Shown piece after piece: positions 32,229 to 64,000 of a DNA stretch of 64,000 bases; within the stretch, counting starts at the first letter, position 1; each line of letters opens with the position of its first letter. The stretch spans positions 145,038 to 209,037 of the forward strand of contig NW_005434618.1 in NCBI RefSeq assembly GCF_000315625.1, read 5' to 3'. The notes under the pieces are model-generated. The model searched no databases, had not been told where the DNA came from, and saw only the letters and a list, made by a program, of their open reading frames with translations. A program made the translations under genes and the position numbers. The DNA is from Guillardia theta CCMP2712 (taxonomy: Eukaryota > Protista > Cryptophyta).

Positions 32229-33525
32229 ATGATGGCAGAGGAGGTTTGGGGACGGGAACCTACATGGCGGGAAGTAATGAGAGCTTCCTCGTCGCTTGCA
32301 CCTCAACTCGTAGACTATCTCCGACTGGTCTGCTCATGTTAAGTCTTTACTTCATACTGATACAGATCTAGGGAACGCTGCTAATGCCGGACAACAGTGG
32401 TGGCGAGGTCTCGTCGGAGGGGTTGCACACATGCGTATCTGTCATATCTCTTTACTCAGACGTCATAGAGAGCAGTAGAGGAAATGCTCTAACACGGTAG
32501 ATGAACCTTCATAGTATGGCTTGTGAATGTCTTTATGACTGTCTCAGGTGTAAGATGCAACGTCGATCAGGATTTATCTCAAACTCCAAGAGCGAAGTTC
32601 TCCTAGAATTTATTCGGCGTTTCGAGTTGATCTCTGAGATGCTCTGCGATCGAGCCCTGGCTAATCGGAAATTTATGCTCCTACTTATCATCGAATTAGC
32701 AAAGGCCTGTTGTAAGATACAAAACTGCAGGAAAGGCCGAGAGATAAACTACCGCTCCGATAGTCTTGGGCTAACAAGGGCACATCGTTTCCAGCTCTCA
32801 TGGTCACATGTGGATATACAGCGATTTAGATGGTGGCTTGCTGGATCGAGCATTCATGCTCTTCGCCCAGTTGTGTACCTGGCCCTTATGCAGAAGTTTG
32901 GCAACAAGTCATGGATTCCATGGATAACCTCCTTCTTTATCGATGCTCTTTCAGAAGCTCTGTCTACTCACCCAAACTTCCTTTCAAAGCAAACCATCAA
33001 GAATATGTCACATCAGAGCTTTCAAGGTTGTACCGTCGCTGATGACTCCAACAAACCCAAGTCCTACGGAACGAAGGAAATGGATACTTCACGTGAGCCA
33101 CAATCGTCTGAGGCATCTGAATTGGACCTTCAAGCTGTTGTGGACGATGAACCAAGAGTAGAGGGAACAAGAAGGGAAATGAAGGACTTGCACCGGCTGC
33201 AGATGAGGGCTGCAGCAATCGAGCTCATACTTCAAAAGGAAATCCAGAGGCGCCGTGGTCTACTTCTGCTTTACCTCTTCAGGCCTCCAGTGTTCCAGAC
33301 TCTCCTCGTGCCTCTGGTCCTGACCTTTGCTCTTACTTGGATTGTAAAATTCATTGACAATTTGCAGATCAAGCTCCTGCAAAGGCTGACCTCAAGAATA
33401 CCAATTTTGGGTGCTCTGATAGGTTTTGATTGTTGGAAGCGAATTTCCTTGACCACTAAGCAGGAGTTCTCCTCGAGATGCTGATGTCTTTGGGAAGATA
33501 CTATTTTTACACAGCTGGTACGTAG
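32229..33525 (+). CDS. PEX16: peroxisomal biogenesis factor Pex16
   Basis: SEGLHT..SLYSD, ELISEM, IIELAKACCK, IHALRPVVY...KSWIPW, EIQRRR.LLLLYLFRPPVF, IPILG, RYYFYTAGT* match the Pex16 family pattern. Confidence 0.88.
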
Positions 33526-36795: not shown

Positions 36796-39700
36796 ATGAT
36801 GCCAAAGCTTGAAATAATCTGCAGGATTCTGATTTTACTCATAGCGTGTGGATTTCGAGGTAAGGTCCCCTTCTGTGTTTTATCAGTAACACTTTATTGC
36901 AGAACTAAGTTGTGTAAATGTTTTCAATATCAATCCTTCAAAGGGGCCACAAACGGGAGGTACTGAAGTGACAATATCTGGGTCTGACTTCCACAGGGGA
37001 AAAACGAGCTGTAGGTTCGGAAGTGGAACAAGTACTGAAACAGCATTATTCTTTAGTGATAGCAAGATATCTTGTGTCAGTCCTCCTTCGGCAGATCTTG
37101 GAGCCGTTTCATTAGAGGTTTCAATTGATAGTTCAGCATCCTTGGACTCGTTTACAAACAGCGGAGTATTCTTTTTCTATCAAGGTAAGATGATTAAACA
37201 TGTTCGTTTGCGATCATGACACCAATGTCTCAGCTTTCCCATCTGTGAACAGTCTTCAACCTTCTGCTGGTCCGCAATTGGGAGGAACTCAAATCACTTT
37301 GAAAGGGGATGGATTTGAGAATGACCAGGATTCCTTCTGCCGATTTTTGCTCGCGGAGAACAATTACATAGCAGTCCCAACCAGATGGCTTGGTCCATCA
37401 GAGATCATTTGTACTTCTCCAACTTCGGATAATGTTGGACTTGTAACCATAGATGTCACAAACAATGCTTTGGACTTTTCTGTAACGAGCGTTTTTTTCG
37501 CTTACAGACTTCCAGAAAGTATTGGTTTCATTGTTCCTTCTCTGGGACCTATCTTGGGTGGGACAAACATATCTGTATATGGACGGAACTTCGTGAATTC
37601 GGATTCCTTAGCTTGTAAATTTGGAAATATCATAGCAAAAGCCAACTTCGTAAATGAATCATGTATCATTTGTTTTTCTCCATCTCTCTCAGAGGGGATC
37701 TGGATTGTTGAGGTTTCGAACAATTTGGTGGATTTCTCGAACAATTTGGTGGATTTCAAGGTTTATGCTTTGATTGACATAGAAGAAATCTATCCTCTTG
37801 CACTTGACCGTTCGATCAAGGATTTGAAAATAGTTTCTTCTCCTTTCATTCCTCCGTTGGATTTTGTACAGTGCAAATTTGATTCGTACATTGTGAATGG
37901 AACGTTCTCTGGCACCTTCTGCATTTCATATGTGGGGTCAATTTGTAATCTGTCAGGGTTTGTATCCATTGTTTGTCCAGTTCCTTATAGTCAACTTATG
38001 GCAACGAGAATACAGCTGGAATATTCCTTGGATGGTCACACGTTCCTTCCTACAGGAGTAAGTCTTGCAGTGCGAGAAGTGACGAATGGCACCTTGTATA
38101 TACAGCCCACGTTTGCGTTTCAGAGGTATGCTCCTTTTTGACATTTAGGTTTCTGACATTTCATTAGTGGCATTCCGGTGACCATCAGTGGGATATCTGG
38201 CTTAGTTTTCCCACCGACTTCATGCAAATTTGGCAACGCTATTTCTCCTGTCGTTCGATACATGAATTCTGATGAAATTGTTTGTATTGCTCCTGATTGC
38301 TATCACACAGAATGCATGGCTGGAGTGCAAGTCTATGTACAATTACCGTTTGAATCCAATCATATTTTGGTGTTGGAATCCTTTTATTACATCTCCGAGC
38401 CACTCATCATATCCGTGCTTCCTTCAGAGGGACCAGATGCAGGTTCTAGTGAAGTCCTTCTGTACGGGATGGGATTTCCGGCATACGAAGGAGGAGGTTG
38501 CTACTTCAACAACACATTCGTAAAAGCTGTGATGCAGTCCAGTTCGTTGTGGAAATGTATTTCTCCTCCAATGGCACCAGGGCAGATTGAACTTTCAGTA
38601 GGGTTTGATTTTATGAAAAGCGTCGAAGGCTCAACAGAATTTCACTACTATAGATCTCCAATCATATTGGAAGCAGCGCCTAGTACAGGTCCAACGACAG
38701 GTTCAACAATTGTATCAATTTCAGGGTCAGATTTCTATTTCTCGTATCATTTGAAGTGTAAATTCAATGGCGCAGAAATTGAAGCTACATGGATATCGAA
38801 CTCATTGCTGAAATGCCAATCAATACCTTCTAAAAGGCCTGGAATTGTCCAGATTCAAGTTTCATTCAATGGATACGATTACTTGACGAATGAAATGTCC
38901 TTCTTATATTTTCAAACACTGAATTTGATGAAAGTGATACCATCTGTTGGCATCGAGGGGATGGAATCAACGATTACTCTTGTCGGGCAGGCCTTCAGCT
39001 CCTCTCTGTTTTTGTCTTGCAAATTTGTTCAAGGTGCCAAAACATTGTATTCAAGGGCTATGGTAATATCATATTCACTTTGTGTCTGTAAGGTTCCACA
39101 ATATCCTCCTGGGATGATCAATCTTGCACTTTCGAGCAATTTTGCAGACTTAGCAAGCAGTAGCCTTCTGTTCCACGTTTTTGGACTACTGGAAATACAA
39201 TCAATCTATCCCACGATCATTGCATCCGAGGGTGGAAGTTCAATCACTGTCTTTGGTTCGAATTACGACCGTAACATTTCTTGTTGCATGTTTGAGGTTT
39301 TTCGTCAAACCGCAAATATCTTGTCTTCGTCTATGGTCGTGTGTGCAGCTCCGACCACTTGGCCAGGAAAGATTTCAGTATCTCTGTCTCATAACTGCAA
39401 AGACATCGCTAGCTATCAGTACACTGTTCAAGCAATACGGAGTCCACAAATCATCAGTCTTAAGCCGACTTTAGGACCGGTCCAAGGAGGAATCTCCATT
39501 TCGATCTCTGGAATCTATTTCGATTCCTTTTCTGTTTGCTGCTTTGAAAGGTCTTGCAATCCAATCACTTTCTTAACTTCCAGCTTTCTCAATTGCTTAT
39601 CTGTTCCGAGCTCTCCAGGGAGTATTCAGGTCTTCATAAACACAAGCAACATCATTTCCAACAGTTTCCTTTTTGTTGCATTTGTCGAACCTCAAATTGT

Positions 39701-45700: not shown

Positions 45701-48700
45701 GTGGGAACAATCGTGTTTGGTAACAATTGTAGGAAGTCATCTTGACATCAAGGGAATGAATATATTTGTAAATTCAAGGAGATTGAATACTTCCTCTCTC
45801 AAAGTAGTGACTTCATCGAAGATTCTTGGTGTCATCCCATCTTCACGAAATTTCGAGCAAACTAAGATTTCTGTTTACTCCACGGACATGGTCGAATTAC
45901 ATAGCTTCGCTTTTTCATACCAACAAGCAGCAATCATTGAACGAGTTTCTCCATCAATTGTCCAATCCTTTGAATCTAGTACGTTGACTGTCTATGGAAA
46001 CTTTTTCCACAACTCTAGAGAACTTCTCTGCGTTTTTGGATTTGGTCACAAAGTCGCAGCGCACTTCCTTACCTCCACCTTGGTCACATGTACTACCCAA
46101 CCTTTTGTGAACGGATGTGTATCCCTTCGGATGCAAAACGTCTTATATGACGTAAGCATGAAAGGTAAACAAGTCTGTTTTAGACAGAGATTAAAAGTTT
46201 TCAACATTCATCCTACAAGCAGCTGCTTCGCTGGCGGAACAAAGATATCAGTGCAGTTGAACAGCGCTTTTGAAGATTTTAACGGAATTCAATGCCACTT
46301 TGGAAGGTTGGTTTCGGAAGCTACTCTAGTGAATGGATCTACAATTGAATGTATAGCCCCATCTTCGCATCAATCATTCTCCGTCGATGTCAGACTTTCT
46401 AAAAATTCCTTATACCTAGATGGGCATTTCAAGTTTGAATACATCAGAGCACCTCAGATTTTTGGAATATATCCATCCTGGAGTACAACATTTGGAAGGA
46501 CGATTGTACAGGTCAATGGAAGATACTTTACAAAAGAAAGTATGGAAATTGCTCTTGGGAACACACTTCTTAACTCCAAGAGTCTTACTTTCCTTACTTC
46601 CACTGTCATCAAAATTGTTGTTCCAAGCAGCAACGGAACATTGGGAATAACCAGTCTCCAGATCTGTAACAAGTTTTGTCCAGATAGCAAAGAAATCACT
46701 GATTTTGAGTATGTTTCAGAGATCCAAATCACAGGGGTAATTCCGTCGTTCTCTGATGGGCAGGGACATGTTGTGACAATTCAAGGGAAAAATTTCAATA
46801 CAAAACTTGAATATTGTTGCAAGTTTGGTGCATCATTTGCAACGATAAGTAAAGTATTGACTGATTCAGTGATGACTTGTTATTTTCCGAGTATGAGTGA
46901 GGGTACTATGGTCAGGGTCCAGATCGGTCCAGCATGTCAGTTTGTGACAACAAGTCATCTATGGATCAGCGTAAATATTCCCGAGCTCTTGATTGACATT
47001 TTCCCCACTCTTGGACCAATGAAAGGTGGAACTCTCATTCACTTGGTGCTGCCTGAACCAAAAGTCTCGATTGATTTCAGTAAGGGCATATGCAGTTTTG
47101 GAAATCATTCCACTTCGATTGCAATTATCAAAAATATGCCTGTCTGTGGCTCAACTCCAGATGTGCTTACACCACAACGTAAAACCCTTGTTGCTGCGTT
47201 GTCTAACTCTAGGATGCGTTTGAGAGCCAAAACAGGTTTTCTTTTCTATGAAGACCCAAACATTTATTCCATTTATCCCTCCATCGTTAAAAGCCATGGT
47301 GGCCAGATTGTGAGCGTCTACGGCACTGGCTTTCGGCAAGGAGGGATTTCGTGTGGATTTGGCAGCGGCTTCTCCATAGCAGCTGGCCGATGGCAATCTT
47401 CTAGTCTAGTACTATGCTTCACCATACCCTCTAACCAAACTACAACAAGATCGCTGGAGATCAGCTTGAATGGAGGGTATGACTTCACTGATAGCGGTGC
47501 AGAGATACTATACGAGGACGGAGCTGTCTTGACAGGTGTGAGCCCTTCGAGAGCGATGAGCGATACGCCCAACCAGGTTGTCACCATTTCCGGAGACTCT
47601 TTCAAGCAAGGCTGTCGACATGTCTGTCACTTTGGAACAAGTGCAGAAACGCGTGCTGTATATCTCACGTCATCCAGCTTGGTATGCTCCGTGCCAAGGA
47701 GCAAGCCGAGCACTGTTTTGTTGACAGTAGCTCAGGATGGGTTGAAGAGTGAGGAAGGGGTTTGGTTTGTTTACGAGCATTATCATTCAGCTGACTTGAG
47801 CCCGAGCACTGGGTCATCCTTGGGGGGCACAGAAGTGACGGTTCGGAGCAACACGCTTCAAGACACCTATACGGAAGGAGGCTGTTGGTTTGGCAGTGCG
47901 TATGTGCCAGGACGCATCGTTGCTCGTAACAGTCTTGTCTGTGTCAGCCCACAGTACCTTGGCAACGACAAAGTGGTAGGGGTGAAGGTCATGCTGCACC
48001 GAGCGGAAGGAGGAGATGTGTACCTGGATACGAGTTTCGCATACAGGGTTCCGGCGTTGACTGATAGAGTTACTCCGACCGTGGGATCGAAGAACGGAGG
48101 TACTTCTGTGCTCGTTGTTGGATCCAACCTAGAGCCATCACATAGATGCCTGTTCGGCGGAGTTGAGGCAGCCCGTTCCCAGCTGATATCATCATCGGCT
48201 CTTGAGTGTTTTACACCTGCATCAAGCTTTGTTGGACGTGTTGTTGTACAAGTGAGCCTTGACGGCAGTATAGAAATGTCTGCCATGAAGCTGAGCTTCA
48301 CATATGCACCTGATGCAACGGTACACTTTGCGAACATGGGCTCGATGGTATATCAGAGTGTTGTGGTTCTGACTGGAGAGCACTTTCAGGACAGCAATTC
48401 ACTGACGTGCAAATTTGGTGGATCCAAATCAGTACTTGGTTTATATCAGACTTCAACCCTGGTGCAATGCTCTGTGCCGATGCTTGATACTGGCACATAT
48501 GCTGTCGGAATCAGTAACAATGGAGTAGATCGCGGAGTAGGTGCTGCAGTGGTCCAGTATAGGAATGCGATACAGATCTTTGATGTAACTCCTAGCCAGG
48601 GATCACTGTCAGGAGGAGGGCAGATCACTGTCCATGGAAGTGGTTTTCCTACACAAGATGGCCCCGCGTTGTGCTGGGTAGACCAGGTGTCTTCAGTTGC

Positions 48701-51700
48701 GATCGCTCAGCATTCGTCGCATGTGGTATGCATATTACAAGGACGGCAAGAGGCTGGTGTTGTAGACGTCTACTTGCAGTGGGGACGAGTAGCTGGGAGG
48801 AGTACTCATGTTCTATTTGAATATATCAATCCTGCGGAAATCGTGGGCATCATGCCGAGTGTCGGGAGCCTCAAGCCACGTTCAGGGTCAAGGGTAACTG
48901 TCATTGGGTCAGGCTTCGACGCGGGAGTGGGGCTGCGATGTCGATTTGGTAACGCGAATTGTACAAGGTCCGCAGTGAAGTGGGTAACGTCCAGTCTAAT
49001 ACAGTGCTTGGTACCCGAACAATCTGTGCCGGGACCTGTAGAAGTGAAAGTCAGCAATGATGGAGGGAGAGAGTACTCGACAAACGGACCAGCTTTTCTT
49101 TACGAGGACCCCCCTTCTGTACACGGGATATTTCCAAAAGTCATCAGGCCAGGGGTCTCACATCAAAGCACGATATCTGTGATTGGGAAGCTTTTCAAGA
49201 ACGTACCAAATTATGTAGCGTGTCTCTATGGCAGTAATAGTATCATACAGGGGGATTACATCTCATCGACACTCATTGTCTGCCAAACACCGAGAAATGT
49301 CAGTGGGACAGTGGCTGTTGCGGTCAGGACAGGTTGGCATGGGTTTGTGTCGGGGCCAGGATGTTTTGTGTCTGTGCTAGGAGCTCAATCCTTCATGATT
49401 CAACCTACCTCTGGCCCATTGAGTGGAGGGACCCTTGTAACAATTACTGGGATCCACTCCGGCATGTATGATACAACAGAAGAAATCTGCTGTTTCTTTG
49501 GGCACAACGGTACGAAAGTCACTTTGCTAAGCACTTCAGCCGTCCTTTGCACAGTGCCGGCAAGCTTCAGGTATGGTGTGGTTACCGTGAGTGTACTTAC
49601 GACATGCCGAGCAAGTGGTACCCTTGTGGGCACGAGGCCCTTTCTGTACCTGCCGGCAGTACATGTCGTCGATATCTATCCAAGACGAGGGTCCCAACAT
49701 GGCCGATCATCAATACGAATCATAGGAATAGGCTTCTTGGGAGACCGAGCAAGGTGTAAACTTGGGAATCTGTCTTCTCCCGAGGATGGAACGAGGATTG
49801 TCTCCTCCACTCTCATCGAATGCATTGCTCCTATTTCCGAGGCAATAGGTCAGACCTTGGTCAGAGTAAGCTTGGACGGTGGGCAGACGTTCTCATCAGA
49901 CGAGGTGGTCTTCACATACGAGGCTGACCCGACCGTGCTCTCTCTTCAGCCTTCAACAGCCTACAGCAAGATGAGCAACCAAGTTGTGACTGTCCACGGA
50001 AGGCATTTCACCGACGCCGGAGATCTTCTCTGTTGGTTTGGAGCAGGCCATGTCGTACGCGCTTTGTATGTGTCTTCTGTGAGAGTGCTGTGCTCTATTC
50101 CAGAGCAAAAGCCTGGTATGGTAAGAGTGACTGTGACCAAGGATGGTCATAATAATGCTCCTATCGATGCTTTAGCTTCTGCCTACTTGTTGTATCTGTA
50201 TTACAACAAAGGAATGAACTCTAGATTTACAATCTGGCCGACCAGCGGTCCATCTCTGGGAGGCTCAGTCGTACGACTGGTTGGTATTCAGGACTCACTG
50301 AAGATCTCAACTTGTTTATTTGATTACCAGACGGTCAACGTCGCAGTTTACAACCACAGCATTGCATGTGTATCCCCTGCACATGGAGAAACAGGTTCTG
50401 TCAAAATACAGCTCGTCCCATCGAGTCTATCCTCTCTCTCTGGCGTGGTGGACTTTGATCAAGCCGTGACTTTCTTCTATTATGATGATCCTGTCGTTGA
50501 CAGTGCGTTCTGGGTTGGGCAATCTGGCGGAGGTACGGCCTTCGTCAGTGTACTTGGCAGACATCTCATGGCCAATCACTCCATGTGTCGATTGACTTTT
50601 GAGTCTGGAGACAGCAAGGTACTCCCAGGCACGAGCCAGACTTCCACCAAGATTCTTTGTGTGTCTCCTCCTCTTCCGCAAAGCGTAGGCAGGACTTGGG
50701 TATCGATCAGTTTGAACGATGGTGTAGACTTCACCTCAAGTAACACCCTAGTATCGACAAGCAGCAAGATCGATGTAAAGAGTGTGTGGCCGTCCACAGG
50801 AGGTACAGATGGAGACATGGTGATTACAATCTTTGGTGCGATGTTCTATCCGCGCCAGCATCGTCTTGACTGCTGGTTCGGCTTCCGAGTGAGCACTCCA
50901 GCCCTCTATTCCAGCTCTACTCTGGTCAAGTGTGCCGTGCCGAAGCTCCTTCCCGGTACCGTCGCTGTGTACTTGGGCGATGAGCAGGGCATACATGGCA
51001 ATAGCAACGGTCAATACACGGTCGTAAGTAGGGGACATGTCCATGCAGTCGAGCCGAGCAGCGGGCCGGTGACAGGAGGTACCGCCGTCGTCATGAGCGT
51101 GCGAGGAGGTGCAGGCTTTGCGTCAGCTATCTTCTGTCGTATTGGGGAAGGTCAGGTGGTGCAGGCCCAAGCGCTCAGCAGCTCCAGGATCCTTTGCACC
51201 ATGCCGGCTGTACAGAAGAGCGGGACAGTGCTGATACGGGCAGTAGAGGGAGCCCAAGGGTCGAGTAGGGGCCTTGAGGGAGAAGTGAGGTATGTTTACT
51301 ACAATGAGCCTGTGGTGACTCGCGTGGAGCCAAGCAGTGGCGCTCTGGAAGGGGGTACCATGCTGAGCCTGTATGGGCGGGGGCTGGAAGAAGGCAGCAA
51401 TCTAACGTGCAGGTTCGGGACCGGAGATGCGGTCGCAGGCCGGCAAGAGACTTCTACGATGGCCACCTGTGTTGCACCCCCGCGCCCAGTCAAGGACGTC
51501 GTCTGGTTGCAGGTGAGCCTCAACGGAGGCGCGGACTTCTCCGGATCTGCAGTCGAGTACGCATATGAGGCCGGGGCTACGGTGGACGAGGTGAGGCCGT
51601 CCGCGGGAGATAGCGGGGTCGACGGGCAGACCGTGACGGTGATAGGCCGCCACTTCGGGTCGGGACAAGGGCTGAGCTGCTTGTTCGGGACAAGGGGGCG

Positions 51701-54700
51701 GGTACGGGGCATGCCGATGACGTCGACGGCGGTAGTCTGTGTAGCGCCGAGAGGGGGTCCGGGGGCGGTCGGGGTATCGGTGAGCAACAACGGAGTGGAT
51801 GAAGGGCAAACAAGGGGCGGGTTCGTGTACAGCGGTGATCTTAAGGTAATACGCAAGGTCACCCCAAGCTCAGGGCCGTTGGCTGGGGGTACCAACGTGA
51901 CCATAGCAGTCGACGGTTTGCGTCGGGCGGCGTTGTCATGGACGACAGAGAGACCTTGGGGTTGCGTTTTTGGAACCTCAGTCGTGCAAGCACAAGCTTT
52001 GACCACGTCGCTGATCAGCTGTAAGTCGCCTACAAGCTTGCGGGCAGGAGAAACGAAGATAGAGATAGAACTGTCCAACCATGGTCCAACATTGAGTATA
52101 GAGTCTGCATTCGTCTACTACGAGGGGCCAGAGGTGAGCTCGGTGGTGCCCAGCATAGGGAGACAGACGGGAGGTATGGTGGTAAGTGTCGTGGGCCAGG
52201 GCCTCATATCCCGAGATCCCGTTTGTCAATTTGGCCCGTCCATAGTCCAGGGCAAGGACGTTACGAGCCTTAGCTCATCATTGCTGCTATGTACCACGCC
52301 CGCATCACTGCTTGGCAGTACGGTAGTCAGGCTGCAGGTGAGCCTCAACGGAGGCGCGGACTTCTCCGGATCTGCAGTCGAGTACGCATATGAGGCCGGG
52401 GCTACGGTGGACGAGGTGAGGCCGTCCGCGGGAGATAGCGGGGTCGACGGGCAGACCGTGACGGTGATAGGCCGCCACTTCGGGTCGGGACAAGGGCTGA
52501 GCTGCTTGTTCGGGACAAGGGGGCGGGTACGGGGCATGCCGATGACGTCGACGGCGGTAGTCTGTGTAGCGCCGAGAGGGGGTCCGGGGGCGGTCGGGGT
52601 ATCGGTGAGCAACAACGGAGTAGAAGGAGAGACCGCTAGCGGCATCGTCAGCGTGAGGTATGAGTACCGCTCAGGGATGTCAGCAAAGTCCGTGGTACCT
52701 AGTCAGGGACCGTCAGTGGGAGGAACGGTCGTGAGAGTGATGCTTGAAGGGACGATCGGAGGTGAGGACGGGACTGGGGAGTGGCTCTGTGTATTCGGAG
52801 ACTCTATGAGCCGCGGGCAATTGAACGTGTCATCGCCGGACAACGCTTCCGTGGCATGCAATCTGCCACCATCGATGCCCTCTACCGTCTCTGTACAAGT
52901 GCGACGACCGAGTGGACAGAAGCTATCAGGGGACCTAAGGTTCCAGTACGTACTTCAAGCCAGGCTCATAAGTGTATCTCCAAGTCAAGGTGGAGCAGGG
53001 GGAGGATCGAGGGTGACCATCACAGGAGAGGGAATCGGGCGAGAGGGGCTGAGGTGCTGGTTTGGGGACAAGGCCGTGGAGGGGAGAGGCGTGGAGTGGA
53101 TATCGTCAAGCCTGGTGACGTGCATGACTCCAGAGCTTAACATCTATGATGGCGTAGTATCGATCGGCCTCGAACGGATTTTTTTCGTTTCAGAGGGTTT
53201 GCAATATCGAGTGTACAGTCTACCAGAGGTTTACAGTATAATGCCCTCGATGCTACATGCCGGCACTAAATCTTCAGCAGTGACCTTGACGGGTCATTTT
53301 GGAGTCTCTCCAGGCCCATTGTTTTGCAGAGTCTCAGGAACGAGTCTGTTCCCTGCAGAGATAATGTCAATTTCCCACGTTCGTTGCCAGATTTTCTCGA
53401 AAGTCACGGGTACGTTCGTAATGGATTTGGCATATTCTCTAGGGGATCGTCTCGCACAATTTGTCAAGGTTTTGTTTGTTCCCCAGCTTTGTAGATTTTC
53501 TATGGTGCCTACATCGGGACCTGATTCAGGAAGTACACGGATAAGGATTTCACTCCATGATTGCCATTTTTCGAGATCTGCTGCTGTGTCTTTTGGCTTT
53601 CAGAGAACGAGCTCGTCTCAACTTACCTCCACGCTTTTGATATGCTATAGCCCTGCTTTGACTTCTGACGCGAATACTTCTGTACGTGTCCAATTGTCTT
53701 CGCCCTCGTCTGGAATTCCTCTCACACTAGGGCAGCTATTTGTCTATTTCAAGACTCCGGTGGTGTCAAAGGTGTTTCCTTCATTTGACACGATACTGGG
53801 AAGGTCGAGTGTGCTTATTGAAGGGGTTGAATTTCCACCGGCTAGCATTGCGTGCAAGTTTGGTCAACGAGTTTCAAACGAATCTGAATGGTTGTCTTCA
53901 TCGGCGCTGTCGTGCACCGTACCACCAACAGATGCCACGCAAACTGTCAAACTCTATGTGAGTTTCAATCACGGCGTGGACTTCACAGATTCCCAGGTAG
54001 ATTTCATGTACACTGCACTGATGACCACAACACGAATCGTACCGACGGCGGTACCGCTTAATGCCTTGAGTGCAATTACACTTTACGGTTCTCATTTCTC
54101 AGATATGGAGGATTTGAGCTGTAGCATTGGATCTAGATTACGTGTTCCAGCCTTCTTTCAATCTTCAAGCATCGTAAAGTGTACAATTAATCAATTGGTT
54201 CCAGGGCGTTACACTCTGAAAGTCAGTAGTGAAGGTACTTCATTCCGAGATAGAAATGGTCCAGTGTTGGAGGTTTTGCCCAGGTCTGGTCGTTTATTGC
54301 TATGGCCAACTTTAGGACCTGTGTTGGGTGGAACAAGAATATGGTTGTCGTTTGTAGATCCCATGGATTATAACGAAATTCTGGTGGTGAAATTTGGTAC
54401 AATTGAGGTGGTAGGTAAACTGTACAACCATTCTCATATCTTGCTTGTGGCTCCACCGTCAAAGGCTCGATCCCCGTGCGTTGTACAAGTGCAGTCATCA
54501 CTTCCCTATCCAATATCTACCCGATATCAGTATTACCTCCCTCCAATGGTCAATGGCATCTCTCCATCTGTTGGGCATGTTGGCGATTCTGACATTCGGA
54601 TATATATATCTGGAACTTTATTCCAACCTGACTTGCTTAGGGTAAGGTTCGGAACAGAAACATTAGATGCTAAAAAGACTACTTTCGTAACTTCCACCTT

Positions 54701-57700
54701 GCTGCTCTGTAGTGCACCTATCGTATATCATGAACGAGTGGTACATGTCACTTTTACGGTTGATGGTCAAGAATACCTTGATGGTGTAGAAGTCTCAAGA
54801 TTCGTCTATGTAAAGACTCCTCAGGTTTTCGAAGTAGTGCACAACCATTGCATCAGAGATGAGGATTTGATTACAGTTGTTGGAGACAGCTTTTCAGAAC
54901 TGTCAGTTTCTGAATGTCGATTTGCACATAGAACGACAACTCGTGGCTTTCTGATGTCTTCTTCAGCGATAACATGCTCTGTGCCACAAATTTCCTACAA
55001 GCAAACTCTGCTCAACATTGTGGTTGATGGAAGGAAGATCTTCAAGTCTGAAATTTCAAAATGTCAGCGCGATGGAGTCAGAATACATCCAAGTCTTGGT
55101 CCCAGCACCGGAGGATCCCAAATATTGGTGGAGAGCCAACATCAAGAAATGCGCCCTCGTGACCCAGTACGGTGCTGGTTCAGACAATCTGTAGTACAAG
55201 GGAGATGGATAGCCTCAAACAAAGTTGAATGTATTTCACCTCCTTTCTCAGGTCTACATAATTCCACAGAAGCTGTAACACTGTCAGTTATCAGCGGAAG
55301 CTACAAAATGGAATCCATATTCTTATACTTTGTACCATCCCAAATATACGACATTACCCCAAGGACAACTTATGCCGGCACATCTCAAACATTGACAGTG
55401 ATTGGACAGGCATTTCATGGCGAGCTTGTGCCATCTTGCATCTTCAATCGCTTGACGAGAAGAAGCGATGTGAAAACATTGTCATCAACAAAACTCGTGT
55501 GCAATGTCGGCAACTTGCAGGCATCAAATTATTTCCTTACAATTGAGTACAAGTACACAGGTAATCAAAGTTCAACGAACCCGATTTTGATCGAGCTCCT
55601 GAAGCCTCCACAAATTGAATCACTGACCTCCGAGATGAAAACTAGCAACCCCCCGATCATACAATTGAGAGGCAAACATTTCAATCCGTACCAGCATCGT
55701 CTTGACTGCTGGTTCGGCTTCCGAGTGAGCACTCCAGCCCTCTATTCCAGCTCTACTCTGGTCAAGTGTGCCGTGCCGAAGCTCCTTCCCGGTACCGTCG
55801 CTGTTTACTTGGGCGATGAGCAGGGCATACATGGCAATAGCAACGGTCAATACACGGTCGTAAGTAGGGGACATGTCCATGCAGTCGAGCCGAGCAGCGG
55901 GCCGGTGACAGGAGGTACCGCCGTCGTCATGAGCGTGCGAGGAGGTGCAGGCTTTGCGTCAGCTATCTTCTGTCGTATTGGGGAAGGTCAGGTGGTGCAG
56001 GCCCAAGCGCTCAGCAGCTCCAGGATCCTTTGCACCATGCCGGCTGTACAGAAGAGCGGGACAGTGCTGATACGGGCAGTAGAGGGAGCCCAAGGGTCGA
56101 GTAGGGGCCTTGAGGGAGAAGTGAGGTATGTTTACTACAATGAGCCTGTGGTGACTCGCGTGGAGCCAAGCAGTGGCGCTCTGGAAGGGGGTACCATGCT
56201 GAGCCTGTATGGGCGGGGGCTGGAAGAAGGCAGCAATCTAACGTGCAGGTTCGGGACCGGAGATGCGGTCGCAGGCCGGCAAGAGACTTCTACGATGGCC
56301 ACCTGTGTTGCACCCCCGCGCCCAGTCAAGGACGTCGTCTGGTTGCAGGTGAGCCTCAACGGAGGCGCGGACTTCTCCGGATCTGCAGTCGAGTACGCAT
56401 ATGAGGCTGGGGCTACGGTGGACGAGGTGAGGCCGTCCGCGGGAGATAGCGGGGTCGACGGTCAGACCGTGACGGTGATAGGCCGCCACTTCGGGTCGGG
56501 ACAAGGGCTGAGCTGCTTGTTCGGGACAAGGGGGCGGGTACGGGGCATGCCGATGACGTCGACGGCGGTAGTCTGTGTAGCGCCGAGAGGGGGTCCGGGG
56601 GCGGTCGGGGTATCGGTGAGCAACAACGGAGTGGATGAAGGGCAAACAAGGGGCGGGTTCGTGTACAGCGGTGATCTTAAGGTAATACGCAAGGTCACCC
56701 CAAGCTCAGGGCCATTGGCTGGGGGTACCAACGTGACCATAGCAGTCGACGGTTTGCGTCGGGCGGCGTTGTTATGGAAGTCGGAAATGCCTTTGTGGTG
56801 TTTATTCCGGGGAATTTCGGAAAACAGAAACGCAGTAAGGGGACGGGCTTTGACCACGTCGCTGATCAGCTGTAAGTCGCCTACAAGCTTGCGGGCAGGA
56901 GAAACGAAGATAGAGATAGAACTGTCCAACCATGGTCCAACATTGAGTATAGAGTCTGCATTCGTCTACTACGAGGGGCCAGAGGTAAGCTCGGTGGTGC
57001 CCAGCATAGGGAGACAGACGGGAGGTATGGTGGTAAGTGTCGTGGGCCAGGGCCTCATATCCCGAGATCCCGTTTGTCAATTTGGCCCGTCCATAGTCCA
57101 GGGCAAGGACGTTACGAGCCTTAGCTCATCATTGCTGCTATGTACCACGCCCGCATCACTGCTTGGCAGTACGGTAGTCAGGCTGCAGGTGAGCCTCAAC
57201 GGAGGCGCGGACTTCTCCGGATCTGCAGTCGAGTACGCATATGAGGCCGGGGCTACGGTGGACGAGGTGAGGCCGTCCGCGGGAGATAGCGGGGTCGACG
57301 GGCAGACCGTGACGGTGATAGGCCGCCACTTCGGGTCGGGACAAGGGCTGAGCTGCTTGTTCGGGACAAGGGGGCGGGTACGGGGCATGCCGATGACGTC
57401 GACGGCGGTAGTCTGTGTAGCGCCGAGAGGGGGTCCGGGGGCGGTCGGGGTATCGGTGAGCAACAACGGAGTAGAAGGAGAGACCGCTAGCGGCATCGTC
57501 AGCGTGAGGTATGAGTACCGCTCAGGGATGTCAGCAAAGTCCGTGGTACCTAGTCAGGGACCGTCAGTGGGAGGAACGGTCGTGAGAGTGATGCTTGAAG
57601 GGACGATCGGAGGTGAGGACGGGACTGGGGAGTGGCTCTGTGTATTCGGAGACTCTATGAGCCGCGGGCAATTGAACGTGTCATCGCCGGACAACGCTTC

Positions 57701-60700
57701 CGTGGCATGCAATCTGCCACCATCGATGCCCTCTACCGTCTCTGTACAAGTGCGACGACCGAGTGGACAGAAGCTATCAGGGGACCTAAGGTTCCAGTAC
57801 GTACTTCAAGCCAGGCTCATAAGTGTATCTCCAAGTCAAGGTGGAGCAGGGGGAGGATCGAGGGTGACCATCACAGGAGAGGGAATCGGGCGAGAGGGGC
57901 TGAGGTGCTGGTTTGGGGACAAGGCCGTGGAGGGGAGAGGCGTGGAGTGGATATCGTCAAGCCTGGTGACGTGCATGACTGTAGCAATGAATGAGGCGGG
58001 AGGATATTCCAAGATCTTGCTTTATTTTCAGGGACAGATTTGTGGACCACCCGTAATTTATAATGGTGTTGGTATTCCCCTTCTCAAGAGTATCAGTCCT
58101 TCTATTGGTATTGTCAACCTTCAAGGTCAGATTGCAACCTTGATAGGAGAGGGCTTTCATCTCAATGCTGCTTCAGTCTACTGTAGGCTTGGCTTAGGAC
58201 ACACAGTACGTGCTGTAAGTGTATCATCATCAATGGCTGTGTGTACAGTACCTTTGGTCAAACAGGCTGGACTTTCTCAGTTCACATGTTCGCCATACAA
58301 GCAACCGAGTGGCAGTGAGCAAAGTCTACAGTACTTGTTCTTGGACATAGGAAGAATTGATGCTATCTTTCCCACAGCTGGACCCATACGTGGAGGCAGT
58401 AGTGTAAGCGTGATTGGTCTGAAAGAACATGAAATTAGCTTCAAATACAGGTGCCGATTTGGGAACGATGAGGTGCAAGGAAGCTTTGTTGGAAACCATA
58501 CTTTGGTCTGCACCTCTCCTCAAACTAATCAAGAAGGAAGAGTTACTGTCTCAGTATTTGCCAATAGATACAGCCTGGACAATGGTCAAGTTTACGAGTA
58601 TTTCCTCTCTCCAGCCCTAAAGAGAATAGATCCATCTGTGGTAGGTAGGGGAGGTGGCCAGATTGTGAGCGTCTACGGCACTGGCTTTCGGCAAGGAGGG
58701 ATTTCGTGTGGATTTGGCAGCGGCTTCTCCATAGCAGCTGGCCGATGGCAATCTTCTAGTCTAGTACTATGCTTCACCATACCCTCTAACCAAACTACAA
58801 CAAGATCGCTGGAGATCAGCTTGAATGGAGGGTATGACTTCACTGATAGCGGTGCAGAGATACTATACGAGGACGGAGCTGTCTTGACAGGTGTGAGCCC
58901 TTCGAGAGCGATGAGCGATACGCCCAACCAGGTTGTCACCATTTCCGGAGACTCTTTCAAGCAAGGCTGTCGACATGTCTGTCACTTTGGAACAAGTGCA
59001 GAAACGCGTGCTGTATATCTCACGTCATCCAGCTTGGTATGCTCCGTGCCAAGGAGCAAGCCGAGCACTGTTTTGTTGACAGTAGCTCAGGATGGGTTGA
59101 AGAGTGAGGAAGGGGTTTGGTTTGTTTACGAGCATTATCATTCAGCTGACTTGAGCCCGAGCACTGGGTCATCCTTGGGGGGCACAGAAGTGACGGTTCG
59201 GAGCAACACGCTTCAAGACACCTATACGGAAGGAGGCTGTTGGTTTGGCAGTGCGTATGTGCCAGGACGCATCGTTGCTCGTAACAGTCTTGTCTGTGTC
59301 AGCCCACAGTACCTTGGCAACGACAAAGTGGTAGGGGTGAAGGTCATGCTGCACCGAGCGGAAGGAGGAGATGTGTACCTGGATACGAGTTTCGCATACA
59401 GGGTTCCGGCGTTGACTGATAGAGTTACTCCGACCGTGGGATCGAAGAACGGAGGTACTTCTGTGCTCGTTGTTGGATCCAACCTAGAGCCATCACATAG
59501 ATGCCTGTTCGGCGGAGTTGAGGCAGCCCGTTCCCAGCTGATATCATCATCGGCTCTTGAGTGTCTTACACCTGCATCAAGCTTTGTTGGACGTGTTGTT
59601 GTACAAGTGAGCCTTGACGGCAGTATAGAAATGTCTGCCATGAAGCTGAGCTTCACATATGCACCTGATGCAACGGTACACTTTGCGAACATGGGCTCGA
59701 TGGTATATCAGAGTGTTGTGGTTCTGACTGGAGAGCACTTTCAGGACAGCAATTCACTGACGTGCAAATTTGGTGGATCCAAATCAGTACTTGGTTTATA
59801 TCAGACTTCAACCCTGGTGCAATGCTCTGTGCCGATGCTTGATACTGGCACATATGCTGTCGGAATCAGTAACAATGGAGTAGATCGCGGAGTAGGTGCT
59901 GCAGTGGTCCAGTATAGGTATGCGATACAGATCTTTGATGTAACTCCTAGCCAGGGATCACTGTCAGGAGGAGGGCAGATCACTGTCCATGGAAGTGGTT
60001 TTCCTACACAAGATGGCCCCGCGTTGTGCTGGGTAGACCAGGTGTCTTCAGTTGCGATCGCTCAGCATTCGTCGCATGTGGTATGCATATTACCAGGACG
60101 GCAAGAGGCTGGTGTTGTAGACGTCTACTTGCAGTGGGGACGAGTAGCTGGGAGGAGTACTCATGTTCTATTTGAATATATCAATCCTGCGGAAATCGTG
60201 GGCATCATGCCGAGTGTCGGGAGCCTCAAGCCACGTTCAGGGTCAAGGGTAACTGTCATTGGGTCAGGCTTCGACGCGGGAGTGGGGCTGCGATGTCGAT
60301 TTGGTAACGCGAATTGTACAAGGTCCGCAGTGAAGTGGGTAACGTCCAGTCTAATACAGTGCTTGGTACCCGAACAATCTGTGCCGGGACCTGTAGAAGT
60401 GAAAGTCAGCAATGATGGAGGGAGGGAGTACTCGACAAACGGACCAGCTTTTCTTTACGAGGACCCCCCTTCTGTACACGGGATATTTCCAAAAGTCATC
60501 AGGCCAGGGGTCTCACATCAAAGCACGATATCTGTGATTGGGAAGCTTTTCAAGAACGTACCAAATTATGTATCGTGTCTCTATGGCAGTAATAGTATCA
60601 TACAGGGGGATTACATCTCATCGACACTCATTGTCTGCCAAACACCGAGAAATGTCAGTGGGACAGTGGCTGTTGCGGTCAGGACAGGTTGGCATGGGTT

Positions 60701-63700
60701 TGTGTCGGGGCCAGGATGTTTTGTGTCTGTGCTAGGAGCTCAATCCTTCATGATTCAACCTACCTCTGGCCCATTGAGTGGAGGGACCCTTGTAACAATT
60801 ACTGGGATCCACTCCGGCATGTATGATACAACAGAAGAAATCTGCTGTTTCTTTGGGCACAACGGTACGAAAGTCACTTTGCTAAGCACTTCAGCCGTCC
60901 TTTGCACAGTGCCGGCAAGCTTCAGGTATGGTGTGGTTACCGTGAGTGTACTTACGACATGCCGAGCAAGTGGTACCCTTGTGGGCACGAGGCCCTTTCT
61001 GTACCTGCCGGCAGTACATGTCGTCGATATCTATCCAAGACGAGGGTCCCAACATGGCCGATCATCAATACGAATCATAGGAATAGGCTTCTTGGGAGAC
61101 CGAGCAAGGTGTAAACTTGGGAATCTGTCTTCTCCCGAGGATGGAACGAGGATTGTCTCCTCCACTCTCATCGAATGCATTGCTCCTATTTCCGAGGCAA
61201 TAGGTCAGACCTTGGTCAGAGTAAGCTTGGACGGTGGGCAGACGTTCTCATCAGACGAGGTGGTCTTCACATACGAGGCTGACCCGACCGTGCTCTCTCT
61301 TCAGCCTTCAACAGCCTACAGCAAGATGAGCAACCAAGTTGTGACTGTCCACGGAAGGCATTTCACCGACGCCGGAGATCTTCTCTGTTGGTTTGGAGCA
61401 GGCCATGTCGTACGCGCTTTGTATGTGTCTTCTGTGAGAGTGCTGTGCTCTATTCCAGAGCAAAAGCCTGGTATGGTAAGAGTGACTGTGACCAAGGATG
61501 GTCATAATAATGCTCCTATCGATGCTTTAGCTTCTGCCTACTTGTTGTATCTGTATTACAACAAAGGAATGAACTCTAGATTTACAATCTGGCCGACCAG
61601 CGGTCCATCTCTGGGAGGCTCAGTCGTACGACTGGTTGGTATTCAGGACTCACTGAAGATCTCAACTTGTTTATTTGATTACCAGACGGTCAACGTCGCA
61701 GTTTACAACCACAGCATTGCATGTGTATCCCCTGCACATGGAGAAACAGGTTCTGTCAAAATACAGCTCGTCCCATCGAGTCTATCCTCTCTCTCTGGCG
61801 TGGTGGACTTTGATCAAGCCGTGACTTTCTTCTATTATGATGATCCTGTCGTTGACAGTGCGTTCTGGGTTGGGCAATCTGGCGGAGGTACGGCCTTCGT
61901 CAGTGTACTTGGCAGACATCTCATGGCCAATCACTCCATGTGTCGATTGACTTTTGAGTCTGGAGACAGCAAGGTACTCCCAGGCACGAGCCAGACTTCC
62001 ACCAAGATTCTTTGTGTGTCTCCTCCTCTTCCGCAAAGCGTAGGCAGGACTTGGGTATCGATCAGTTTGAACGATGGTGTAGACTTCACCTCAAGTAACA
62101 CCCTAGTATCGACAAGCAGCAAGATCGATGTAAAGAGTGTGTGGCCGTCCACAGGAGGTACAGATGGAGACATGGTGATTACAATCTTTGGTGCGATGTT
62201 CTATCCGCGCCAGCATCGTCTTGACTGCTGGTTCGGCTTCCGAGTGAGCACTCCAGCCCTCTATTCCAGCTCTACTCTGGTCAAGTGTGCCGTGCCGAAG
62301 CTCCTTCCCGGTACCGTCGCTGTGTACTTGGGCGATGAGCAGGGCATACATGGCAATAGCAACGGTCAATACACGGTCGTAAGTAGGGGACATGTCCATG
62401 CAGTCGAGCCGAGCAGCGGGCCGGTGACAGGAGGTACCGCCGTCGTCATGAGCGTGCGAGGAGGTGCAGGCTTTGCGTCAGCTATCTTCTGTCGTATTGG
62501 GGAAGGTCAGGTGGTGCAGGCCCAAGCGCTCAGCAGCTCCAGGATCCTTTGCACCATGCCGGCTGTACAGAAGAGCGGGACAGTGCTGATACGGGCAGTA
62601 GAGGGAGCCCAAGGGTCGAGTAGGGGCCTTGAGGGAGAAGTGAGGTATGTTTACTACAATGAGCCTGTGGTGACTCGCGTGGAGCCAAGCAGTGGCGCTC
62701 TGGAAGGGGGTACCATGCTGAGCCTGTATGGGCGGGGGCTGGAAGAAGGCAGCAATCTAACGTGCAGGTTCGGGACCGGAGATGCGGTCGCAGGCCGGCA
62801 AGAGACTTCTACGATGGCCACCTGTGTTGCACCCCCGCGCCCAGTCAAGGACGTCGTCTGGTTGCAGGTGAGCCTCAACGGAGGCGCGGACTTCTCCGGA
62901 TCTGCAGTCGAGTACGCATATGAGGCCGGGGCTACGGTGGACGAGGTGAGGCCGTCCGCGGGAGATAGCGGGGTCGACGGTCAGACCGTGACCGTGATAG
63001 GCCGCCACTTCGGGTCGGGACAAGGGCTGAGCTGCTTGTTCGGGACAAGGGGGCGGGTACGGGGCATGCCGATGACGTCGACGGCGGTAGTCTGTGTAGC
63101 GCCGAGAGGGGGTCCGGGGGCGGTCGGGGTATCGGTGAGCAACAACGGAGTGGATGAAGGGCAAACAAGGGGCGGGTTCGTGTACAGCGGTGATCTTAAG
63201 GTAATACGCAAGGTCACCCCAAGCTCAGGGCCGTTGGCTGGGGGTACCAACGTGACCATAGCAGTCGACGGTTTGCGTCGGGCGGCGTTGTCATGGACGA
63301 CAGAGAGACCTTGGGGTTGCGTTTTTGGAACCTCAGTCGTGCAAGCACAAGCTTTGACCACGTCGCTGATCAGCTGTAAGTCGCCTACAAGCTTGCGGGC
63401 AGGAGAAACGAAGATGTCGTTGGTGGACGATCTTGGTAACGTCGTTGTCAAGGGCAAGTCTGCATTCGTCTACTACGAGGGGCCAGAGGTAAGCTCGGTG
63501 GTGCCCAGCATAGGGAGACAGACGGGAGGTATGGTGGTAAGTGTCGTGGGCCAGGGCCTCATATCCCGAGATCCCGTTTGTCAATTTGGCCCGTCCATAG
63601 TCCAGGGCAAGGACGTTACGAGCCTTAGCTCATCATTGCTGCTATGTACCACGCCCGCATCACTGCTTGGCAGTACGGTAGTCAGGCTGCAGGTGAGCCT

Positions 63701-64000
63701 CAACGGAGGCGCGGACTTCTCCGGATCTGCAGTCGAGTACGCATATGAGGCCGGGGCTACGGTGGACGAGGTGAGGCCGTCCGCGGGAGATAGCGGGGTC
63801 GACGGGCAGACCGTGACGGTGATAGGCCGCCACTTCGGGTCGGGACAAGGGCTGAGCTGCTTGTTCGGGACAAGGGGGCGGGTACGGGGCATGCCGATGA
63901 CGTCGACGGCGGTAGTCTGTGTAGCGCCGAGAGGGGGTCCGGGGGCGGTCGGGGTATCGGTGAGCAACAACGGAGTAGAAGGAGAGACCGCTAGCGGCAT
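36796..64000 (+). CDS. giant secreted/cell-surface IPT/TIG (Ig-like) repeat protein, >9,000 aa, truncated by the window end
   Basis: Signal peptide MMPKLEIICRILILLIACGFR|ELSC; introns at ~36860-36902, 37184-37233 and 38126-38167. One reading frame then runs from 38169 to 64000 with repeated P.SGP..GGT.VTI.G.NF...C.FG...S...C..P...V.VS.NG.DF units. The ORF track shows no stop-terminated + ORF in that frame after 38169. Confidence 0.93.
37716..37757. repeat. 21-bp in-frame tandem duplication (SNNLVDF x2)
   Basis: tcgaacaatttggtggatttc repeated twice. Confidence 0.9.
47298..52645. repeat. copy A of a >=5.3-kb near-identical direct repeat (partner 58653-64000, offset 11,355 bp)
   Basis: Shadow ORFs recur at a constant offset (47814/59169, 48806/60161, 50427/61782, 52226/63581). 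Confidence 0.95.
51508..51796. repeat. 289-bp single-IPT-domain unit, six copies (51508, 52333, 56344, 57184, 62863, 63688)
   Basis: tgcaggtgagcctcaacggaggcgcggac...gagcaacaacggagt repeated nearly exactly. Confidence 0.93.
55691..57980. repeat. copy B: 2.3-kb duplicate of 50855-53129 (offset 4,836 then 4,851 bp)
   Basis: Identical shadow ORFs at 51402/56238 and 52781/57632; the offset shifts by 15 bp at a replaced patch. Confidence 0.95.
58653..64000. repeat. copy C of the long direct repeat (partner 47298-52645), runs off the window
   Basis: Begins at ggtggccagattgtgagcgtc; about 8 point differences and one 41-nt replaced patch relative to copy A, counted by eye. Confidence 0.95.

Follow-up and report, generated by a model that had tools for sequence, protein, structure and literature searches.

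The stretch of DNA considered here, 64,000 nt of scaffold JH993020.1 (assembly GCA_000315625.1) of the cryptophyte alga Guillardia theta CCMP2712, ends in part of a very large coding frame that encodes a chain of IPT/TIG domains and that contains several long, near-identical internal copies of itself. We refer to the whole 64,000-nt stretch as the window and give all positions in its coordinates. From 38157 to 64000 on the forward strand a single stop-free frame of 8,614 codons is found, which extends past the window end. A custom profile built from the sequence itself places 97 consecutive IPT/TIG domains in it, and the Pfam model PF01833 scores 603 and 498 bits (18 stretches each) against a gathering cut-off of 20.9, with further PF01833 matches in the spacer U1 (Table 1), in an upstream exon and in the downstream continuation that we call R. 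By its Pfam scores the frame is a pure chain of IPT/TIG (immunoglobulin-like, or Ig-like) domains.

The repeats were delimited by blastn self-comparison of the region from 38 to 64 kb together with a repeat finder, and both reproduced the three scales of duplication claimed in an original prediction made from the letters of the window. Positions 47298–52645 recur at 58653–64000 (offset 11,355; 99.4% identity), a block predicted at 5.3 kb or more that reaches 5.8 kb once it is extended on the scaffold; positions 50844–53129 recur at 55680–57980, as predicted (2.3 kb, offset 4,836 at the start and 4,851 at the end; 98.0% identity); and a one-domain unit is present in six copies (51498, 52323, 56334, 57174, 62853 and 63678) spaced 825 or 840 nt apart with 98.0–98.7% identity, the copy number and spacing being those predicted and the length being 302 bp rather than 289 bp. 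Every duplication offset is a multiple of 3 and all copies lie within the one open frame, which had also been foreseen. The order of segments in the window is P X Y U1 Y' U2 X'' Y'', that is, copy, unique spacer, copy, with the spacers U1 and U2 each occurring once within it.

Identity starts or stops abruptly at each border, and domain pairs other than the copies are 10–50% identical; matches this long lie far beyond what chance would give. Between copies A and C there are exactly 8 single-site differences, four of them replacements (F/L, N/Y, Q/P and A/S) and four synonymous, in agreement with the roughly eight sites predicted, and in addition a replaced patch of 41 bp that the prediction had not listed. 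The three copies of Y are roughly equidistant at single sites (~0.17%), each being the odd copy at some of them, and A and B are identical across the last 993 nt of Y.

Table 1. Segments, repeat unit, private patches and candidate intron in the window
Feature	Position	Strand	Remarks
P, unique	up to 47297	+	precedes X
X, copy A	47298..50843	+	domains 36-49 in part; 2 copies in gene; GC content at third codon positions (GC3) 0.49
Y, copy A	50844..53129	+	domains 49-57; copy B matches as far as 53129, copy C as far as 53107; GC3 0.66
U1, unique spacer	53130..55679	+	domains 57-67 in part; TIG; ~1x depth in run X3; GC3 0.41
Y', copy B	55680..57980	+	15 extra bases in private patch; X3 and X5 contigs span the U1 to Y' junction
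U2, unique spacer	57981..58652	+	domains 75-78 in part; GC3 0.37
X'', copy C	58653..62198	+	X3 contig of 3,587 nt at ~2x spacer depth; P to X and U2 to X contexts both in X3
Y'', copy C	62199..64000	+	leaves window; ends at 64462 on scaffold
302-bp unit, first of six	51498..51799	+	covers the tail of one domain and the bulk of the following one; offset 3 domains; GC3 0.77-0.79
Copy B private patch	56779..56846	+	68 nt versus 53 nt in A and C; sequence unrelated to the A/C version
Copy C private patch	63416..63456	+	41 nt, 28 mismatches versus A and B, length unchanged
Candidate 42-nt GT..AG intron	38126..38167	+	from sequence, would take out both in-frame stops and connect the giant frame with the TIG exon upstream

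The gene is larger than the frame. Upstream, TIG domains start at about 37200 and are parted from the giant frame by the two in-frame stops that the candidate intron would remove, and downstream of the repeats TIG domains extend over 1,288 codons or more. The first in-frame methionine (37200) showed no signal peptide. The upstream neighbor at 32501–33481 is similar to Pex16, a peroxisomal membrane protein (E 6e-17), and the TIG gene would therefore start between about 33.5 and 37.2 kb. Public gene models split the giant frame into products of 2,111, 2,824 and 931 residues with spurious ends; the first two of these (window 46908–53650 and 55635–64164) finish in short spurious exons that read another frame of U1-type sequence. 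Several transcriptome-sized runs contain 80–93% of the sequence words, and no run with these words is recorded as RNA; in one of the runs examined, X5, a contig of 14 kb spans P and X. The sole run that is certainly RNA, X22, contributed just 10 reads, from ~6% of the run. A literature search found no paper on Guillardia theta together with the TIG domain.

Integrity of the assembled copies

Four runs were compared with positions 53000–58999. Run X3 dates from 2021, comes from a study other than that of the probable source sample and holds 98 Mb of contigs, a genome-sized amount that we read as DNA. Its contigs cross from U1 to Y' with 41 letters on the Y' side, and at Y' to U2 and U2 to X they reach 30 letters into the repeat, the overlap to be expected when a unitig of k = 31 runs into one; X is also entered from P in another contig, with window 47268–47297 forming the loose end at 58653. 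In both X3 and X5 a third exit from Y was seen at 57958 (= 53107), in frame and reading as a normal TIG strand, and it was then located on the scaffold at 64463, as predicted from the contigs. Contig depths in X3, used as a proxy for copy number that is confounded with GC content, are 140–190 for U1, 203 for U2, 290 for X, 456 for Y and 705 for the unit, or about 1:1:2:3:4-5. One would expect 1:1:2:3 for U1:U2:X:Y and a value between 3 and 6 for the unit, because about half of the unit's k-mers are specific to one of two unit types. The depth check named in the original prediction as a guard against mis-assembly or joined haplotypes is thus in line with the assembled copy numbers. Given the novel junctions in an independent run, depths that match the copy numbers and a nucleus reported to be haploid (PMC4007541), the duplications in the window are very probably real.

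The alternative is that the assembler laid down one locus two or three times, or joined two haplotypes in tandem. The genome is an older draft with N gaps 1.3 kb beyond the window end, the next 5.7 kb of the scaffold shows signs of redundant assembly (a mosaic copy, a U1 that occurs again and a frameshift of -2 at the join, described below), and one reference base conflicts with three runs, all of which could be taken in favor of such an artefact. It would, however, have to produce the P to X, U2 to X, U1 to Y' and Y' to U2 contexts and three distinct exits from Y in a run made independently, the depths of ~1:1:2:3 from a haploid nucleus, and the patches and single differences private to individual copies, and we regard it as improbable. 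The conflicting base is at 53221, T in the reference and C in runs X3, X5 and X9, which is probably a reference error or a strain difference, and some of the single-site differences between copies could therefore also be reference errors. A look-up of the products that a gene caller might derive from the junction unitigs gave no match, and a word search with a 383-aa query across the end of Y', U2 and the start of X'' returned no protein of 210–670 aa, a blank that is uninformative.

Past the window we read the scaffold extension (L001) with window-equivalent coordinates. There copy C stops at 64462, so that what it repeats is 47298–53107 (5.8 kb) and not a full 11,355-bp unit. It is followed by a 92-nt stretch, Q, that starts at 64463, and then by a second U1 at offset 11,353, a shift of -2 that meets a stop at 64620; two N gaps (L001 19681–19780 and 19836–19950) precede a further Y copy, D, in which letters of the A, B and C types are mixed as a mosaic, and after D a second Y end and Q at 70207 lead in frame into the new TIG domains R. 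The second U1 has 0 differences in 760 nt, the U1 contigs of X3 and X5 continue through 53202 unbroken, and the contigs that pass from Y to Q carry at least 255 further letters matching nothing in the compared stretch, with no return to U1. The scaffold from 64555 to 70299 (L001:18921–24665) is probably a redundant assembly, and the true arrangement would then be a single open frame that runs P X Y U1 Y' U2 X'' Y'' Q R.

Two readings of this region were dropped. Our first, a full tandem unit of 11,355 bp, gave way to the read data and the scaffold extension that put the exit of copy C at 64462; the other, in which the further 5.7 kb of scaffold is a true second unit, was abandoned in view of U1 at ~1x depth, the U1 contigs unbroken at 53202, the Y to Q contigs that do not rejoin U1 and the -2 shift beside the N gaps. 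Farther on, at L001:27305–28530 (window-equivalent 72939–74164), the same gene holds another recent in-frame duplicate of 434 nt with 99.5% identity and an offset of 792, which runs off the locus end.

Copies B and C also each carry one short, in-frame patch that is wholly replaced (Table 1). No donor for either patch was found on either strand within 74 kb, the best matches being equal to those of shuffled controls. Among the X22 RNA reads, 7 of 10 end at 56838, inside the copy B patch (56779–56838); they may be duplicates of a single molecule, or their source may be an expressed donor locus elsewhere. Wholesale in-frame replacement of 68 and 41 nt within otherwise identical copies is what a dedicated diversification system swapping short cassettes into the repeats would produce. 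We consider such a system extremely unlikely here, as the 74 kb yield no donor above the level of shuffled controls, there are just two such patches and they have no flanking signal sequences, and what seemed to be a third patch, Q, is the native continuation of the array.

Junctions and the three-domain super-repeat

The junctions lie at columns 15 (the GG motif), 26–29 (after G-x-F), 49 (the SS motif) and 56 (after the Cys) of the domain profile; of these, the GG-motif junction (47298/58653) and the one that directly follows the Cys (53129/57980) are where the original prediction had put them. At every junction the column is equal in both parental domains, and the chimeric domains that result, which had likewise been claimed, are therefore of normal length and in register. 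The array has in addition a longer period. Mean identity between domains is 0.24–0.26 at offsets 3, 6, ..., 18 versus 0.21–0.22 elsewhere (permutation p = 0.0004 within the never-duplicated part P), which defines a super-repeat of three domains (~275 aa, 825 nt). Domains of the same phase share just ~22–26% of their residues, and the super-repeat is ancient. The phase assigned from sequence is the positional phase in 23 of the 30 domains of X, Y, U1 and U2, and the duplication offsets of 3, 18 and 42 domains are whole multiples of the super-repeat, so that the phase is unbroken across all junctions.

Thus each junction keeps the codon frame, the profile column and the super-repeat phase, while the DNA flanking it is non-homologous. 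In the 60 nt beside each junction the parental contexts are 27–37% identical, the random level, and the junction from U1 to Y' has at most a partly matching stretch of 11 nt. Homologous recombination was therefore not the founding event. Gene conversion between diverged domains was rejected as a founder as well, since the flanks have no homology for a heteroduplex. The copies are moreover dispersed rather than head-to-tail, so each requires either two unequal exchanges (a duplication and then a deletion) or a copy-and-insert event.

Three or more segmental duplications within the gene would account for the array, placing a 302-bp piece 3 domains, the 2.3-kb Y 18 domains and the 5.8-kb X+Y 42 domains downstream. 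Their founding may have been an illegitimate or microhomology-level exchange, perhaps assisted by weak motif-level microhomology, through either of two putative routes: unequal exchange between non-identical domains of the same phase followed by deletion, or replication template switching. In the simplest reading, selection would have filtered many illegitimate events, and the survivors would be those that kept frame, fold and periodicity. Once copies of 2–6 kb at 99.8% identity exist, homologous exchange among them is to be expected, and near-identical copies probably swap sequence by gene conversion, which would keep identity at about 99.8% and raise GC content with copy number.

The original prediction had instead made homology the founder: homologous unequal crossing-over between misaligned domains, with tandem units expanding and contracting like an accordion. 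The breakpoints at conserved motifs and in register, and the offsets in multiples of the three-domain super-repeat, agree with such a process, and homologous unequal exchange is expected now between the 2–6 kb copies. A different array length is also suggested by run X9, a metagenome relative diverged by 1–4%, in which the contig depths (U1 ~17, X ~17, Y 33, unit 72, versus 1:2:3:4-5 in X3) point, by depth alone, to one X, two Y and four units; this hint from a single relative is what bears on the accordion claim. As the origin of the copies, however, we find it unlikely. The junctions are flanked by non-homologous DNA, and instead of abutting head to tail the copies are set apart by U1 and U2, which occur once each. 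Domain identities are also strictly bimodal, either 10–50% or at least 95%, with nothing between 50 and 95% apart from three chimeric pairs and the patch-bearing domains, and there is therefore no record of steady past growth.

Third-position GC content and the age of the copies

GC3 is 0.38 in the unique domains (n = 46), 0.49 in X (n = 12), 0.67 as the mean of the seven domains of Y (0.66 for the whole segment) and 0.77–0.79 in the six-copy unit. It rises with copy number (Spearman rho 0.74, p = 1.5e-12) in steps at the block borders, and in the separate downstream two-copy segment (72939 and 73731, offset 792) it is 0.465 versus 0.35 alongside. Over whole segments, GC content ranges from 0.41 to 0.67. 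Raised GC3 is a recognized mark of gene conversion (PMC2720389), and its rise with copy number suggests that conversion has been long-running in this gene. A divergence of 0.15% is too short for such a shift, so either exchange with GC-biased conversion has gone on for long or GC-rich DNA duplicates more readily. High identity, these data suggest, need not mean recent origin.

The "very recent" age given to the duplications by the original prediction probably holds for the largest copy; for Y and the 302-bp copies it is uncertain, since their raised GC3 and the X9 depths fit older copies kept alike by conversion. The Y contigs of X9 differ from G. theta by 1.1–1.5%, while the Y copies within the genome differ by 0.17%, and with the copy number in X9 taken from contig depth these values fit an older Y duplication kept uniform by conversion together with a young copy C. 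It is accordingly possible, and we put it forward tentatively, that Y and the 302-bp copies are old and are kept near-identical by continuing gene conversion (concerted evolution), with only the X+Y copy C being young. The climb of GC3 with copy number and its changes at block borders, the Y contigs of X9 at ~2x spacer depth beside X at spacer depth, and the near-equidistance of Y copies A, B and C, with A equal to B over the last 993 nt, all lean in this direction. Against it, the block edges drop from ~100% identity to random with no zone of intermediate divergence, the evidence from X9 is the contig depth of a metagenome, and GC-rich DNA might simply duplicate more readily.

The explanation that we prefer, with reasonable though not high confidence in it as a whole, is that the locus is one giant nuclear gene of Guillardia theta encoding a long IPT/TIG chain, in which a few internal duplications would have passed a filter for frame and phase and the resulting copies would later have exchanged sequence by conversion. 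Several points weigh against it. Three phase-keeping offsets have a chance probability of ~1/27, which is modest, and the order and number of the events are not reconstructable. No long read bridges the region, depths taken from contigs are only a proxy for copy number, with which GC content rises in the same order, the unitigs at Y' to U2 and U2 to X carry 30 and not 31 repeat-side letters, one short of the bridging rule, and the scaffold just downstream shows extra copies, for which redundancy is no more than the probable reading. Gene conversion is inferred, not observed, and among 7 polarizable single differences 4 are GC-to-AT versus 2 AT-to-GC, so there is no GC bias in the newest changes. 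Transcription of the gene, finally, is a prediction, with one certain RNA run and its 10 reads.

A more far-reaching conjecture, rather doubtful in our estimation, is that the duplicated stretch is a long-lived recombination hot zone within a single exon, where copies would be continually made, homogenized and lost, GC-biased conversion would lift GC3, near-identity would reflect concerted evolution rather than youth, and selection would hold the three-domain period. We know of no demonstration of GC-biased gene conversion in cryptophytes. If the hot-zone conjecture were true, biased gene conversion could be followed as a dose response inside a single gene, in a lineage for which the process has no prior description.

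Relatives, known systems and what the array means

Diatoms, oomycetes and uncultured protists have giant TIG-array proteins that are related to this gene. Like those of Cyclotella atomus, Aphanomyces stellatus and Globisporangium ultimum, metagenome open reading frames (ORFs) of 3,000–8,000 aa and animal fibrocystin and fibrocystin-L, it is a long PF01833 chain with the same secondary Pfam hits. With only ~23% identity, however, the likeness to the giant TIG relatives is one of domains and not orthology, and the match to fibrocystin-L is weak (E 8e-20 over 6% of the query). When internal copies were sought in the relatives by a repeated-10-mer share of at least 1%, a test that passes its positive control, near-identical internal copies were found in 5 of 45 giant TIG relatives. 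One of the five (L002) has an in-frame, non-adjacent copy of 1.73 kb with 99.3% identity, the offset of 6,168 being a multiple of 3. The GC3 of L002 is ~0.8 throughout, so that it is unusable for the trend of GC3 with copy number. L002:1-11629, a metagenome contig from ENA, holds three consecutive giant TIG ORFs on the same strand (6,374, 3,542 and 5,696 residues), and the 1.73-kb copy crosses the called end of the middle gene; the three ORFs may be one larger gene.

Domain repeats are known to expand from within, several domains in the interior of an array being duplicated together (Bjorklund, Ekman and Elofsson 2006, PMC1553488). The G. theta array is like that expansion, and like the seven-module repeats of nebulin and the super-repeats of titin, in that many domains are duplicated mid-array in units of a super-repeat, here of three domains (3, 18 and 42). 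It is unlike those systems in that the array is one exon, so that there is no exon shuffling, in that the copies are dispersed and the host is a cryptophyte alga, and in that the copies stand at 98–99.8% DNA identity with their junctions still readable. In its near-identical paralogous stretches with sharply higher GC3 than the diverging flanks, it also resembles GC-biased concerted evolution of duplicated genes (PMC2720389). The difference is that the stretches here are segments of a single exon with a graded dose over 1, 2, 3 and 6 copies, for which GC-biased conversion is the interpretation that we infer.

Rearrangements of the form duplication-normal-duplication in human genomics are ascribed to replication template switching (fork stalling and template switching, FoSTeS, and microhomology-mediated break-induced replication, MMBIR). 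The G. theta copies are like these in being split by single-copy spacers and in having junctions without extended homology, and unlike them in that all junctions are in frame and in domain register and no inserted or inverted pieces were seen. That the junctions are in frame and in register points to a strong selective filter.

As domain-array growth the locus is a clear but ordinary example of a known mode of expansion. What is worth following is the rule of super-repeat phase, the missing homology at the junctions and the dose effect on GC3, the stepwise rise of which with copy number is testable as a sign of biased gene conversion. It also carries a practical warning: the public models fragment the gene, and the downstream scaffold is probably redundantly assembled. 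The growth of domain arrays is usually inferred from old and blurred similarity, but here the junctions are intact, in one exon of a haploid, culturable alga, and one can see both what they conserve, namely codon frame, domain register and super-repeat phase, and what they do not, namely DNA homology.

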